This document shows, in pieces, positions 3,922 to 55,255 of a DNA stretch of 64,000 nt (its first letter is position 1; each line of letters opens with the position of its first letter). The notes below the pieces were generated by a model that ran no database searches, was not told where the DNA came from, and worked only from the letters and a program-made list of their open reading frames with translations. Made by a program: the position numbers and the translations under genes. The stretch is from the sequence record NC_019401.1; one strand, 5' to 3'.

Positions 3922-4296
3922 ATGATACCAAAAACCAACAGTACTGAATATCATTATCAGGTATTAAAATCAATCAAGGAAGTTCACGAATTTAATTCTG
4001 ATCTTTCTGATAGAATGATTTTTATGTCGATCTTTGATAATTACAGAACTGGTGGTGGTCTAAGATTAAGTAAGCTGGGGTATCAAATTTGTAATGACAA
4101 TTCTTTATATGATTTTGCCCCAATTCCTTTCAAAAAGACGGATCGTAATTCAAACGTTTATACATCATTAGACCGGATTTGCACCACTCCATACTATGTT
4201 GATGGAGATACTTTGTACTTATCAGATGATTTAGTAATCGCACAACTAACGTTTTGCAGCGATGACTTTGCTAAATTGTTTGCTGCATTTTTATGA
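3922..4296 (+). CDS. Hypothetical protein
   Basis: 124-aa ORF tightly packed in the operon; normal composition. Confidence 0.75.
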   Translation: MIPKTNSTEYHYQVLKSIKEVHEFNSDLSDRMIFMSIFDNYRTGGGLRLSKLGYQICNDNSLYDFAPIPFKKTDRNSNVYTSLDRICTTPYYVDGDTLYLSDDLVIAQLTFCSDDFAKLFAAFL

Positions 4297-4322
4297 AACG
4301 TCAAAAAAAATTGTGGTATAAT
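4294..4322 (+). promoter_or_regulatory. Early/middle-type promoter TGAAAC-N17-TATAAT with extended -10 (TGG)
   Basis: TGAAAC 4294-4299 and TATAAT 4317-4322; the same architecture occurs at five other sites. Confidence 0.8.
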
Positions 4323-4354
4323 AGCATTGTTAATAGATAAATGGATACAATAGA

Positions 4355-4385
4355 AAAGCACTGAATGTTCAGTGCTTTCTTTTTT
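4355..4385 (+). terminator. Intrinsic terminator
   Basis: AAAGCACTGA-ATGT-TCAGTGCTTT followed by CTTTTTT. Confidence 0.75.
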
Positions 4386-4436
4386 CAAACGGATTTGTTA
4401 GTAATTCAATTATAACTAAAGTGTAAAGAGAGATGT

Positions 4437-5780
4437 ATGAGTGAAGTAACTAAAGAAGTACAAGATATTCTAAGCTATAATCTAAAACCTCTACAAGTAG
4501 TGGAAGCAATGTCCGTTGCAGATGCAGTTCGAGATAGCTTAATGATTTGGGGTTCACCTGGTATCGGCAAATCCGCAATCGCATTACAATATGCCAATGA
4601 CAACTATCCACTTCGTAAAGATAATGTGGGTAAGTTACAATATCTCCTACAACGTGCACAAGACCCTGAAGATTCTCTTGTAACTATGGAAGATTATCAT
4701 AATTTTAGTTGTTCACTACTAGATCAAGAAACTAACTTTATTGATTTCCGTTTATCACAGATTGAACCTTCAGACCTTCGTGGCATTCCAATTCCAGTAA
4801 AAATGTTTTATGATGAAAATGGAACCCAAATTAGTGAATCAGAAATTCACCTATATCCAGGATACATCGAAGAAACAGGCGTAGTATGGGCTTCTCCAAA
4901 CATTCTTAAACTTCCAAAAGATTGGAAAGGTGTAATTCTGTTTGATGAAATCAACTCAGCAATGCCAATTGTACAAGCTGCATCCTATCAGTTGATTCTT
5001 GACCGCCGTGTAGGTGAGCTAGTACTTCCAGAGAATGCACTAATTCTTGCTGCGGGTAACCGTGAAACTGATGGTGGTGTAACATTCAGTCTAGCGACTC
5101 CACTACGTGACCGTATGACTCACATTGAAATGGTTCCTGATTACAATGACTGGATTGAAAATTATGCTATTCCTAATATGCTAAATCCAGGTACAATTGC
5201 ATTTATCAAACAAACTGGCTCCCGTTTGTTTAACACATTAAGTCCAAAAGATGCAAGTCATTCTGGTGGTTCTTCTCCACGTTCTTGGACTCGTGTTTCA
5301 GATATTGAAAATGTTCGTAAGAAAAAAGGTATGTCCTCTGCGGTATATAAAGCACTAATTGCTGGTCGTGTGGGTAGTACTGCTGGTATTGAGTATACTA
5401 CTTATATTGAAAATATGGCTGACTTGCCTGATGTTATGGATATTCTTAATGGTATCGTAACTGATTTTAGTGAACATAAACAAGAAGTTTCTAAAAACTA
5501 CTTTATTACTATCAGTCTAACTCAAAAAATTATTGAATTTGGTCGTTCACGAAATGAACGAAAGGCAATTATCACTGATGAAGAATGGTGCAAGTACTGT
5601 AGTAACTTTATTGAGTTTATTGACAGTCAATTTGCAAAAGAACAATCAGAACTTATTGTCCATGCAATCCGTACTCTTACCGATGCTGGAATTAACATCA
5701 CGTATAGTGAAGTGCCAAAATTCAAAGACTTTGTTCGTAAATACGGACCACTTCTACGTAAAGCACGTCAGATGAAGTAA
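4437..5780 (+). CDS. MoxR-family AAA+ ATPase
   Basis: Walker A GSPGIGKS, Walker B ILFDEIN, sensor LAAGN, PLRDR arginine-finger region; VWA gene adjacent. Confidence 0.88.
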   Translation: MSEVTKEVQDILSYNLKPLQVVEAMSVADAVRDSLMIWGSPGIGKSAIALQYANDNYPLRKDNVGKLQYLLQRAQDPEDSLVTMEDYHNFSCSLLDQETNFIDFRLSQIEPSDLRGIPIPVKMFYDENGTQISESEIHLYPGYIEETGVVWASPNILKLPKDWKGVILFDEINSAMPIVQAASYQLILDRRVGELVLPENALILAAGNRETDGGVTFSLATPLRDRMTHIEMVPDYNDWIENYAIPNMLNPGTIAFIKQTGSRLFNTLSPKDASHSGGSSPRSWTRVSDIENVRKKKGMSSAVYKALIAGRVGSTAGIEYTTYIENMADLPDVMDILNGIVTDFSEHKQEVSKNYFITISLTQKIIEFGRSRNERKAIITDEEWCKYCSNFIEFIDSQFAKEQSELIVHAIRTLTDAGINITYSEVPKFKDFVRKYGPLLRKARQMK

Positions 5781-52890: not shown

Positions 52891-52917
52891 AAAAGGAGCC
52901 ATTAGGCTCCTTTTTTT
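52891..52917. terminator. Bidirectional intrinsic terminator
   Basis: AAAAGGAGCC-ATTA-GGCTCCTTTT; the stop of the - strand gene lies in the loop. Confidence 0.9.
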
Positions 52918-53396
52918 ATATCATTCATTTTAAGTAATCCATCACGTATAAGTTTACGTGCCTGATTTGCTCTCTTTTTAGTATTTGATTCTGGAACCAA
53001 ACCGAAAGATTCCAAAATTGTACATTGTTGTGTTGCTGGGAGGTTTTTAAATTTTTTCACATCAACAGTAAGTGCAGTATGATGAATTACTTGTTCATCT
53101 TCTGGAGTTTTCTCGTTACGCTCTATATAATCTGCTAAATTTCTCAGTACTTCATATACTGGTTTATCTGTTAAGTGACCCAAGCACCTCTTAAAGCTGT
53201 TAACAACTCTGCCCTCCCACCCATTGACTTCATTTTGGAGAACTTCACGACAATGTTGATTTCCTGAGTGTTGGTGATCTAGAACTGGCTTAGTTATTTC
53301 TATTCCAATAATAGGGTCAATATTTTTTTGTTTTTTCAAAAGTTCGTTGCGGTAAGTCGCCGCTTCTTTTGGATTTTTTAATCTTTTCTTTGCCAT
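52902..53396 (-). CDS. Endonuclease VII (T4 gp49)-like junction resolvase
   Basis: VLDHQH, R.VL...N..EG, L.NL..Y and IH match the Endo VII pattern; zinc-binding Cys pairs absent. Confidence 0.7.
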   Translation of the reverse strand: MAKKRLKNPKEAATYRNELLKKQKNIDPIIGIEITKPVLDHQHSGNQHCREVLQNEVNGWEGRVVNSFKRCLGHLTDKPVYEVLRNLADYIERNEKTPEDEQVIHHTALTVDVKKFKNLPATQQCTILESFGLVPESNTKKRANQARKLIRDGLLKMNDIKKGA

Positions 53397-53436
53397 AGAT
53401 ACCCCAATAACGATTCCATGTAGTATTTAATAATTT

Positions 53437-53465
53437 TGGAACATTAATGAAAATTGTGGTATAAT
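53437..53465 (+). promoter_or_regulatory. Early/middle-type promoter TGGAAC-N17-TATAAT with no downstream protein gene
   Basis: TGGAAC 53437-53442 and TGTGGTATAAT 53455-53465. Confidence 0.8.
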
Positions 53466-53471
53466 ATGTTA

Positions 53472-54195
53472 GTAAAACCCTGCTTGGCGGTACGAAAGTA
53501 CTGACAAAATAAACCTGATCCTATCGAAAATGTAGATGGCAGATGAGAAGTTCAAGCAGTTCGCAGTGCAGAAGACACCCGTTAGGAGATGGCATAGTTT
53601 GTACCACCCACGGCAATACGGCACTATAAAGAAGTACACTAGACTGATAGTACTTCCTCGATAGATATATAGGTTCGCACCCTACCAATAAGTTAAGGGA
53701 GTTTATCTGGATGATAAATTTTGCGATCAATTTTTATACAATATTGATCCGTCCAAATTTCCAGATGAATAGGTACTGAGTTTGATTGTATAGACTTAGT
53801 GCTGAGTGTGGTTAGCCCACGACCGTTACTATATGAACTGCGATAGAGAGAAACAGAGTAACCCGCTTTCGTTCTACCTTGTAGAAATTCGCAATACAAT
53901 GAATCGACGACTATCATCGTCAGATATAAATCAGTACTTTAAATAGTACTTTTTTACGCCTTCATTCCCCTGCGGGGGGATGATAGAATCTCTACAAATC
54001 TCGTCAGTAATAAATGTGTTTAACGTAACAGTACAACAGATAGATAATTGAATTGAGTTGTTTCAGTACAAACGAAGTGCAGTACAGAACAACGAAAATT
54101 CTTTGACATTCGAAGAATGGCAAATCTCAATCATTCAGTACAGTTAGAACAGTTAAGAATTTTAGACACAAAAAAAACCAGCACTAAGGCTGGTT
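53472..54195 (+). ncRNA. Candidate large structured non-coding RNA (unknown family); alternatively an origin/primer transcript
   Basis: ~730 nt without a credible ORF in an otherwise densely coding genome; own promoter; at least 10 stems, a GAAA tetraloop and G-U pairs on the + strand; terminator-like hairpins at 53933-53955 and 54176-54195. Confidence 0.65.
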
Positions 54196-54196
54196 C
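54170..54196. terminator. Intrinsic terminator (clear for the - strand, weaker U-tract for +)
   Basis: A8-AACCAGC-ACTAAG-GCTGGTT-CTT. Confidence 0.75.
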
Positions 54197-54200
54197 TTAA

Positions 54201-54377
54201 TTATTTCTTATTTTCCTTTTTGACCTTCTTGTTATATTGCTTCACCAACAGGTCACGGTCAGTCACAGGCATATTGAGTAGCATCTCATAGCTAGTATTC
54301 TCAATGTATACAGAAACCTCCATTAATCCACTTTTAATATCTTCACAGTTCAAACGAAGGTCTGCGATTTCCTGCAT
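54201..54377 (-). CDS. gp51-like baseplate hub / tail assembly chaperone extension (58 aa; absent from the ORF track)
   Basis: My translation: MQEIADLRLNCEDIKSGLMEVSVYIENTSYEMLLNMPVTDRDLLVKQYNKKVKKENKK; LLNMP..DR resembles gp51-type proteins; frame open back to the slippery site. Confidence 0.7.
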   Translation of the reverse strand: MQEIADLRLNCEDIKSGLMEVSVYIENTSYEMLLNMPVTDRDLLVKQYNKKVKKENKK

Positions 54378-54397
54378 AATTTCTTCAGGACTAGAAA

Positions 54398-55255
54398 TTA
54401 GAAGCTTTGTACGAAAAAATTGCTAGGATCAAATTGTAGATTTTCAAGTGTCCATTCATGACCACAGCTTGAACATCCTACTTCCATCTCATGACTCACA
54501 CCAACATTATTAATAAAATCGCTTTTTTCACGAATTTGTTTTAAAATAAATGCTGGCTGTTCACCTAACCATTCTGCAATAAATTCACGTTCAGTAATTT
54601 TAGTACCATCTACAGTTTCAACACTTTCAATGTTTGCTACAATCATTTCAAAGCTAAGTTTTGTCATTGATTCAAAAATAGTACTGAAATGTTCCATTTT
54701 TTCCTCATCACTCATATCTTCTAAATCTTCAAGCATACGTGCTTTCTTTTGTTCTTGGAACATTCTTTGACCGAATGCGGAATATTCTTCCCAAGTATGT
54801 GGTTTGAATTTCAAAAGCAATCCACCAACTTCTTCTAGAAGTAATTCAGGTTGTTCTTCAAGAAGCTCAGCACTATCAAGTAAGAATTGTAGGTCACGTT
54901 CAAAAGCACCATGATGACCACATTCAGGACAATCAACTTCAATATGATATTCACGTTCTTTTGTTGCTAATTTAATTCCGATAAGTAAAAGTTCTACATC
55001 TGGAACATATAACTTACGAGCATCTTCAATATTAGGAACGCAGTTTTCAATAACACTTGCAACTGCTTCACCATTCATTAGTGCATCTGGATTATTAAAC
55101 ATTAATTCATCACGTGCTGAACGTGCACAAATACCACATTCAACTGTATCATTCACTAAAACACCTGAAGGATATTTGATTACATCATTACTTATCAACT
55201 TAGTATAAAGTACTTCAACTTTTGTATACTTTGACAAAGGGTTCATCTTATTCAT
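54398..55255 (-). CDS. Baseplate hub assembly protein (T4 gp26-like)
   Basis: SARDEL....PDAL..G.A...VI..C.P, D...LL..I..AT, CP.CG and C..CG motifs; ends NFF. Confidence 0.8.
   Translation of the reverse strand: MNKMNPLSKYTKVEVLYTKLISNDVIKYPSGVLVNDTVECGICARSARDELMFNNPDALMNGEAVASVIENCVPNIEDARKLYVPDVELLLIGIKLATKEREYHIEVDCPECGHHGAFERDLQFLLDSAELLEEQPELLLEEVGGLLLKFKPHTWEEYSAFGQRMFQEQKKARMLEDLEDMSDEEKMEHFSTIFESMTKLSFEMIVANIESVETVDGTKITEREFIAEWLGEQPAFILKQIREKSDFINNVGVSHEMEVGCSSCGHEWTLENLQFDPSNFFVQSF
54413..54419 (-). other. Predicted -1 programmed frameshift site (U UUU UUC)
   Basis: Heptamer at the N-F-F codons of the gp26-like gene; the -1 frame reads FFRTKLLISSPEEIMQE... into the 54201-54377 ORF. 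Confidence 0.6.

Follow-up and report, generated by a model that had tools for sequence, protein, structure and literature searches.

The longest stretch free of open reading frames (ORFs) in a 64,000-nucleotide (nt) segment of the genome of Cronobacter phage vB_CsaM_GAP32 (NC_019401, 100% identity; hereafter the window, in which a position equals the record position minus 124000) appears to encode a large, ornate non-coding RNA, which is read from the + strand, has its own promoter and belongs, as far as sequence and structure comparisons go, to a new family with no detectable relation to described ones. Its structured core of about 460 nt (53471-53932) contains 13 nested helices (P2-P14) and four pseudoknots (PK1-PK4), each of them maintained through compensatory mutations. 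An initial annotation, made by eye from the letters, had proposed such an RNA, and covariation among homologues, conservation above that of the flanking genes and the absence of a conserved ORF all support it; the gap itself (53397-54200, 804 bp, without annotated gene) is indeed the longest intergenic stretch of the window. Transcription should begin at an early promoter of the host sigma-70 type (53437-53465, + strand; predicted start near 53471), TGGAAC-N17 followed by an extended -10 element, TGgTATAAT, which matches its motif exactly and whose TG ahead of the -10 was also detected by a consensus scan. Six matches to TGRAAC-N17-TATAAT are present in the window, each of them on the + strand; as first noticed in the initial annotation, the other five matches each lie shortly 5' of a listed ORF, and the match at 53437-53465 precedes none.

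The region was found by blastn in 62 jumbo-phage records (Mimasvirus, Eneladusvirus, Asteriusvirus and unclassified relatives), and pattern scans of IMG/VR, GTDB genomes and metagenomes together with nhmmer raised the set to 67 distinct homologues (the loose pattern CGACCGTT-N-GAGAAAC gave mostly chance matches in IMG/VR and was rejected). In the more distant, Asteriusvirus-type phages only query positions 213-727 aligned and the flanking protein genes did not, so that the gap is more conserved than the genes beside it. In every jumbo-phage genome examined the RNA of the window sits between the endonuclease VII (endoVII) gene and a hub gene (in GAP32, the gap is bordered at left by endoVII, 52902-53396, - strand, and at right by GAP32_242, 54201-54377, - strand, a hypothetical protein of 58 amino acids, with the baseplate-hub-like gene also on that side). 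The initial annotation was incomplete in that the family is not confined to jumbo phages and the RNA of the window is one of three paralogues. A conserved motif matched three times per genome in GAP32, 121Q, Serratia phage BF and two jumbo phages from IMG/VR (about 358 and 371 kb). Besides copy A, the one in the window, GAP32 carries copy B between GAP32_343 and GAP32_344 (NC_019401 261341-262046, i.e., 261.3-262.0 kb; locus L032, about 4040-4780) and copy C between GAP32_066 and GAP32_067 (NC_019401 35091-35804, i.e., 35.1-35.8 kb; locus L165, about 4072-4780), both diverged and both in long unannotated gaps. The tree of copies resolved three clades, A, B and C, and since each of them spans several genera, the triplication must be old, with all three copies retained. 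The promoter is kept in copy A of all relatives and in copy B; in GAP32 copy C, a hairpin with a T run (annotated as the terminator of GAP32_066) lies between a TATAAT box and the RNA. When a distant homologue was used as the query, matches to the core were also obtained in the Klebsiella phages RaK2 and K64-1 and the Xanthomonas phage XaC1 (coordinates given with these matches: JQ513383/NC_019526 191645-191697 and NC_027399 191754-191806), which had been missed with the GAP32 query; the family therefore extends to the wider RaK2-like group.

Folding of the single sequence was not discriminating (energy z-scores of -2.8 for the + and -2.2 for the - strand), and a comparative test was therefore needed. 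A structure model was derived from an alignment of 38 distinct homologues (A3) and a scan for covarying column pairs. It comprises 97 pairs in 19 helices, with 90.6% of the cells paired compared to 35-40% in controls in which the partners were slid by one to three columns. The initial annotation had asked for a covariation test among related jumbo phages: both sides have changed in 70 of the 97 pairs, and the covariation score of 0.419 (0.06-0.09 in the slid controls) was reached by none of 500 shuffles. RNAalifold, which is independent of the model, recovered most of the helices (57 predicted pairs, 33 with compensatory change), and a covarying-column scan of the 67 sequences gave the same helices. 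RNAalifold also proposed a UGA/UCA pairing of 53544-46 with 53920-22, which is invariant on both sides and hence not testable by covariation. With an initial, crude MAFFT alignment, RNAalifold did not recover the long-range helices, and that run was discarded; a fold from average base-pair probabilities was useful only in part.

The nested helices of the core, all on the + strand, are P2 (53488-93/53498-503), P3 (53515-25/53535-42), P4 (53547-49/53560-62), P5 (53565-69/53621-25), P6 (53579-82/53610-13), P7 (53631-37/53650-56), P8 (53670-73/53681-84), P9 (53702-10/53761-69), P10 (53773-81/53794-802), P11 (53808-11/53817-20), P12 (53839-43/53889-93), P13 (53846-50/53866-70) and P14 (53873-77/53881-85). 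Across them run four pseudoknots on the same strand: PK1 (53480-87/53552-59), which reaches into the loop of hairpin P4; PK2 (53616-18/53666-68); PK3 (53785-91/53894-900), 99.6% paired with five of its seven pairs covarying; and PK4 (53825-29/53858-62), which reaches into the loop of P13. Distant homologues keep PK3 with wholly different sequences (UUCGUGU/ACACGAA and CUCAUAU/AUAUGAG).

Several stems that the initial annotation had paired by eye are real and covarying, namely 53631-37/53650-56, 53808-11/53817-20, 53774-83/53792-801 and the TTCTAC/GTAGAA stem (53872-77/53881-86). Others needed trimming: the stem drawn at 53702-11/53760-69 covaries as 53702-10/53761-69, the one at 53825-30/53857-62 covaries as 53825-29/53858-62 and is PK4, and the first hairpin is covarying for 53488-93/53498-503 but not for its four outer pairs (53484-87/53504-07), which clash with PK1, while its supposed GAAA loop (53494-97) is not conserved. 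The long-range pairings fared less well. The stem 53521-27/53658-64, thought to close a domain, was 77% paired with a single compensatory change, and 53523-25 pairs instead with 53535-37; the pseudoknot suggested between 53556-62 and 53835-41 was 53% paired without compensatory change, and 53839-43 pairs with 53889-93 and 53552-59 with 53480-87. One of the two long-range pairings and the pseudoknot were thus wrong, and the fold has four other pseudoknots. The short stem 53906-10/53917-21 was weak (65% paired, no compensatory change).

Among the 67 sequences, 27 carry a portable hairpin module, ACAAUAUNGAUCCGUC (53736-53753), at the tip of P9, and 36 lack it. It is found at the tip of P14 in UE-S1 and at both tips in 121Q copy B and loci L177 and L169, as well as, by reading of the sequence, in an E. 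coli island (L214; the P14-tip occurrences are in loci L166, L162, L169 and L214). It may be a docking or protein-binding module.

Behind the core, an intrinsic terminator was recognized at 53933-53957 (+ strand; hairpin 53933-38/53945-50 and a U run), 96% paired with compensatory change in four of its six pairs. Its U run is six to eight nt long in the A and B copies; in the C copies and in the distant clade, the equivalent position carries no terminator. Conservation continues beyond it. The G-hairpin P15 (53962-53983, + strand), UCAUUCCCC-UGCG-GGGGGAUGA with arms 53962-70/53975-83, had already been seen in the initial annotation and is 94% paired; it is kept in all three paralogues, in chromosomal islands and in the distant clade, and its 3' arm, GGGGGGAUG, is invariant, with variation restricted to the 5' arm and always from C to U, giving U.G wobbles. 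The motif CAAAUCUCGUCAG (53995-54007, + strand), apparently unpaired, forms invariant columns in alignment A4 and echoes CAUCGUCAG at 53915-53923; because the reading frame across it differs among homologues, it is kept as nucleotides and not as codons. It is followed by an A+U-rich, variable linker (54008-54102, + strand) that is poorly alignable beyond short recurring words (AGUAC and ACGAAGUG) and in which the covarying-column scan supported no helix. The conserved unit ends with the 3' hairpin P16 (54103-54123, + strand), UUGACAUUC-GAA-GAAUGGCAA, which has a conserved A.G mismatch and is 87% paired with compensatory change in seven of nine pairs; the C copies form the same hairpin with a different sequence (GGAACAUC/GAUGUUCC). 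The stem drawn earlier at 54095-103/54155-63 is not conserved, and the covarying hairpin there is 54103-11/54115-23. For long-range helices between tail and core, the scan of the 67 sequences gave only 3-bp candidates at noise level.

Two forms of the RNA are accordingly to be expected from the sequence, a short one of about 490 nt terminated near 53957 and a read-through form of about 655-730 nt, so that both 3' ends considered in the initial annotation find support. The longer form would reach at least 54123, because the tail is conserved as RNA and because no terminator stands before it in the C copies and the distant clade. A hairpin with A and T runs on both sides (AACCAGC-ACUAAG-GCUGGUU, 54173-54198, both strands), detected in the terminator scan and conserved in A copies, reads as a stop for the convergent genes on the - strand, and the read-through RNA of copy A probably stops at this two-way terminator. 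A conserved GTATTTA at 53421-53431 (TAAATAC on the - strand), located 25-35 nt ahead of the start of endoVII, looks like a late promoter of the T4 type; it and the - strand terminator (54198-54173) enclose the RNA gene from the opposite strand. Extra genes are found at both edges of the unit: in Yersinia phage fHe-Yen9-04 (locus L007, 1846-2652) an adenine methyltransferase gene is inserted immediately after the final hairpin of copy A (window position about 54124), and in phage fENko-Kae01 (locus L010, 254-1210) an additional gene of 957 nt lies immediately upstream of the RNA; the borders of the unit thus act as entry points for extra genes.

That the conserved signal resides in a + strand RNA rather than in a DNA cruciform, as the initial annotation had argued from G-U positions, is supported by the orientation of promoter and terminator, by the pair 53848:53868 in P13 (G.U in 38 of 38 sequences) and by the variation of P15, in which the C-to-U changes preserve pairing only in a + strand RNA. 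Over the whole pairing model of the 38 homologues, 151 cells were G.U and 82 were A.C. On the - strand, a promoter-like pair of boxes was noticed at 53980-54007 (CTGACG, 16 nt, TATCAT; TTGACG in many relatives). It overlaps the CGUCAG and GAUGA motifs, its spacing varies from 14 to 17 nt and it is lost in the distant clade; an antisense RNA from this site is possible but unsupported. No ORF is conserved in position or strand (the longest, of 28-85 codons, are scattered over both strands and over the alignment columns), homologues differ in the frame that follows the invariant AUG at 53980, and a protein-coding or small-peptide gene was rejected because no ORF is kept in frame and position. Some records leave the gap unannotated, and the small "hypothetical" coding sequences that others place over it disagree from genome to genome (the records of Kaldavass, 7t3, Hallingskeid and WPEC5 show three to five of them at inconsistent positions, and in UE-S1, locus L166, 1464-1621, a part of the RNA is labelled "repeat_region"), and these annotations are probably artefacts. 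The core has a G+C content of 43-47% compared to 35% for the genome. A feature without a functional RNA, whether a decayed gene, protein-binding DNA, a cruciform or plain chance, would agree with a single-sequence energy that only modestly beats shuffles and is about equal on both strands. We regard it as extremely improbable in view of the compensatory changes in 70 pairs, the invariant G.U and wobble-only variation (which would read A.C on the other strand), the retention of PK3 by wholly different sequences and the conservation of promoter and terminator in register without a conserved ORF.

Comparison with described RNAs, likewise called for in the initial annotation, returned no family. 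Rfam 15 gave no match in the whole window at the gathering threshold, and at E <= 10 only chance look-alikes in 53300-54400, mostly from the terminator hairpin 54173-98; the distant homologue L181 had no match at E <= 10, and in the island loci only thiamine pyrophosphate (TPP) riboswitch and signal recognition particle (SRP) RNA matches were obtained, located elsewhere in the loci. ARAGORN found no tRNA or tmRNA in the window, and no Rfam family (among them GOLLD, ROOL, OLE, raiA, HEARO, RNase P, tmRNA, 6S, SRP, group I and II introns and ribozymes) was recovered there, in agreement with the hallmarks reported missing at the outset. No description of the RNA was found in the literature. Within the window, the features that define the new family are all present (the core P10-P14, PK3, PK4, the motifs CGACCGUU and GAGAAACNGNNNAACCCGCUU, and the G-hairpin arm GGGGGGAUG), and the covariance model R1 (53771-53903) has a single match there (132.6 bits, E = 3e-28).

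Resemblances to known RNAs were followed up on the alignment and dropped where variable positions, conflicting pairings, loop size or frames were inconsistent with them. The hammerhead ribozyme has an invariant core, CUGAUGA ... GAA, flanking stem II. A hammerhead had been suggested by CAGAUGAG (53540-47), but U4 is an A, the "GAA" at 53563-65 varies (GCA, GAA, GUU, GAU, GUA, GGU), 53565 is paired in P5 and Rfam gave no match. A tRNA-like reading (T-loop and CCA) of hairpin 53670-84 and the CCA behind it was rejected on its loop size, which varies from four to seven nt. Group I introns interrupt a gene between two exons and have a G-binding site and a P3/P7 pseudoknot around the P4-P6 domain. 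Against a group I intron stand the bounding of the unit by promoter and terminator instead of exons, the lack of an Rfam match and the 5' strands of PK4 and P12, which are only 9 nt apart at the would-be P4-P6 site. Words resembling the conserved regions of RNase P, and a Shine-Dalgarno sequence with AUG read into GGGGGGAUGA, did not survive the alignment check.

The order of promoter, structured domain, intrinsic terminator and further conserved RNA is the classical one of a cis-acting leader, either for processive antitermination through modification of the transcribing polymerase (of the HK022 put or EAR type) or for sensing in the manner of a riboswitch or T-box, in which the core would govern whether transcription runs past the terminator (53933-57) into what follows, be it genes in sense orientation or, in antisense, convergent ones. 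The tail is reached only by read-through, copies B and C as well as copy A of Yen9-04 have a + strand gene that begins right behind P16, and the islands and copy A point into convergent genes (for a CI-like repressor, ParB-like proteins and the baseplate hub). We nevertheless consider such a leader distinctly unlikely: no co-directional gene lies directly behind GAP32 copy A or the examined islands of Serratia, E. coli and a metagenome-assembled genome (MAG), the downstream genes have nothing in common, the terminator is missing from the C copies and the distant clade, and three paralogues keep the same core in unrelated operons. Known antiterminator RNAs (HK022 put, EAR) are 70-120 nt long and have no pseudoknots. 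They share with the GAP32 RNA a place just 3' of an early promoter and 5' of a terminator; unlike the GAP32 unit, which often stands alone, they always precede the operon that they serve.

Outside jumbo phages, the RNA was found in chromosomal islands and other elements. In Serratia it lies at the edge of small integrated elements: on the chromosome of S. fonticola GTA-SR07 (locus L169, 61-4270) beside two ParB-like (ParB/RepB-like) genes and a large serine recombinase, and in Serratia sp. 2723 (locus L168, 3257-6033) immediately after a serine recombinase; the element with the two ParB/RepB-like genes is itself located beside tilS. In an Enterobacteriaceae MAG the RNA lies between the thi operon and a CI-like repressor, and in E. 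coli it occurs in an island next to ffs in two of 5,426 complete genomes (LR-29-1, NZ_AP027515; NZ_CM130020). The full-length copy of LR-29-1 (locus L214, 11930-12560), in an island between ffs and ybaA, has Eneladusvirus copy A as its nearest relative, which implies that a chromosomal island and lytic jumbo phages have recently exchanged the RNA. This island also carries an IS3 element, an integrase fragment, genes of the DuOB, DUF488 and DUF4326 families and a small serine recombinase, and about 450 nt downstream of its RNA, before the next gene, there are three direct repeats of about 11 nt (L214 12960-13030; TATCGATCGTT-like, with a GATC site in each) that, to judge from the sequence, could be an operator or iterons. 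A G+C-richer clade of homologues resides on metagenomic phage-like contigs. The RNA is present singly in the islands of Serratia and E. coli and in these unrelated metagenomic phages. The covariance model built from jumbo-phage copies alone scored 96-139 bits on the island and other-phage homologues. Neighbours differ everywhere, and no constant protein partner gene was found beside the RNA: Pfam revealed no common family among the island neighbours, and the proteins adjoining two of the island copies (L214, L168) have no phage homologues. In the islands, as in copy A, the neighbouring genes are convergent and the RNA stands alone.

The presence of the same element in lytic phages and in integrated islands, some of them beside ParB-like genes, could also be explained by a primer of replication, which is the main rival explanation. 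After the manner of ColE1 RNA II, T4 oriF/oriG or the mitochondrial conserved sequence block II (CSB II), an early transcript would fold, form an R-loop at the invariant run of six G (G6, 53974-79), be processed and prime the leading strand in the A+T-rich stretch downstream; three copies would be three origins, and the islands would be replicated by, or titrate, the phage replisome. Self-contained at about 650-700 nt, the unit has a strong early promoter and lacks a dedicated protein; its G run does not vary, not even among the most distant homologues, and is followed by an A+T-rich variable stretch, and there are several copies per genome. ColE1 RNA II is about 550 nt long, must fold correctly and makes a persistent hybrid through a G-rich segment. 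RNA II of ColE1/pMB1 resembles the GAP32 RNA in its own sigma-70 promoter, its G-rich segment and the lack of a dedicated protein; the two differ in that there is no homology, no evident antisense partner of the RNA I kind and no occurrence in the plasmids searched, and the pseudoknotted core of the GAP32 RNA is far more complex. Overall we hold a primer to be unlikely. No match was found among the 72,556 plasmids in PLSDB, which would be unexpected for a replicon relying on host enzymes alone; a core of 460 nt with four pseudoknots and many invariant unpaired bases far exceeds the needs of any known primer; and P15 and P16 are kept as RNA hairpins, of which P15 competes with hybrid formation. 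In addition, the G skew downstream of the G run is weak and the GC skew has no origin signature, and the spacing of copies varies between genera. The - strand promoter-like pair, with its variable spacing and its loss in the distant clade, does not amount to a consistent antisense promoter.

To a trans-acting RNA, made at once on infection for takeover or conflict, with a host component or the RNA itself as its partner, we give an even chance. Host RNA polymerase would make the RNA immediately after infection, and the folded core would be what acts in trans. Since the RNA travels between mobile elements unaccompanied, the partner is probably not a phage protein but a conserved component of the host or, in an RNA-only particle of the GOLLD or ROOL kind, the RNA itself. 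Its likeliest role would be to bind, sequester or scaffold a host component to the benefit of the mobile element in takeover or phage-host conflict, with catalysis by the RNA as a sub-possibility. Several points weigh against a trans-acting RNA: the case for action in trans draws solely on the missing constant neighbour; the invariant G6 run and the self-contained multi-copy unit would also suit an origin primer, and the + strand genes directly behind P16 (copies B, C and Yen9-04 copy A) a cis-acting leader; selection at the RNA level extends to the tail behind the terminator, a fact that the simple picture of a terminated small RNA leaves unexplained; and we infer the transcript, its ends and its abundance from sequence. 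A bolder version, in which an ornate RNA class is traded among mobile elements as a protein-free weapon, lytic jumbo phages making three specialised versions within minutes of infection that capture or reprogram a core host machine or form an RNA-only particle or ribozyme and the islands interfering with the same phages, seems to us rather unlikely.

Among the closest known RNAs are GOLLD and ROOL, large ornate RNAs of phages and prophages that form RNA-only cages as seen by cryo-electron microscopy (doi 10.1101/2024.12.08.627333). They share with the GAP32 RNA a size of 500-800 nt, many helices and pseudoknots, carriage by phages and prophage-like elements, and a promoter of their own without a dedicated protein gene. 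There is, however, no match in sequence or structure (Rfam, which includes both, at E <= 10), and the GAP32 RNA is not located beside tRNA genes, has three paralogues per genome and is found in enterobacterial jumbo phages and islands. Abundant ORF-less phage transcripts have been revealed by RNA sequencing in ICP1 (a non-coding transcript of about 800 nt) and PA5oct (non-coding RNAs ncRNA001-004; PMC7567579, PMC7318152), and no conserved structure has been reported for them. They likewise stem from long ORF-less gaps in large lytic phages, and theirs give abundant early or constitutive transcripts; ncRNA001 and ncRNA002 of PA5oct are not homologous to the GAP32 RNA.

A covariance model of the family would correct those genome records in which spurious small proteins are annotated over the RNA. 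Large RNAs with conserved complex folds are rare, and the ribosome, RNase P, introns, tmRNA and riboswitches each revealed basic biochemistry; here, comparative support is strong and about 60 distinct sequences are in hand, and phages able to grow on laboratory E. coli K-12, Sharanji among them, carry the RNA too, so that it can be tested directly. Its three-copy layout and its passage between chromosomal islands and lytic jumbo phages point to an infection function carried by RNA alone and, if the RNA should indeed prove to be a protein-free weapon, phage-host conflict would have a layer made of RNA only, for which no precedent is known.

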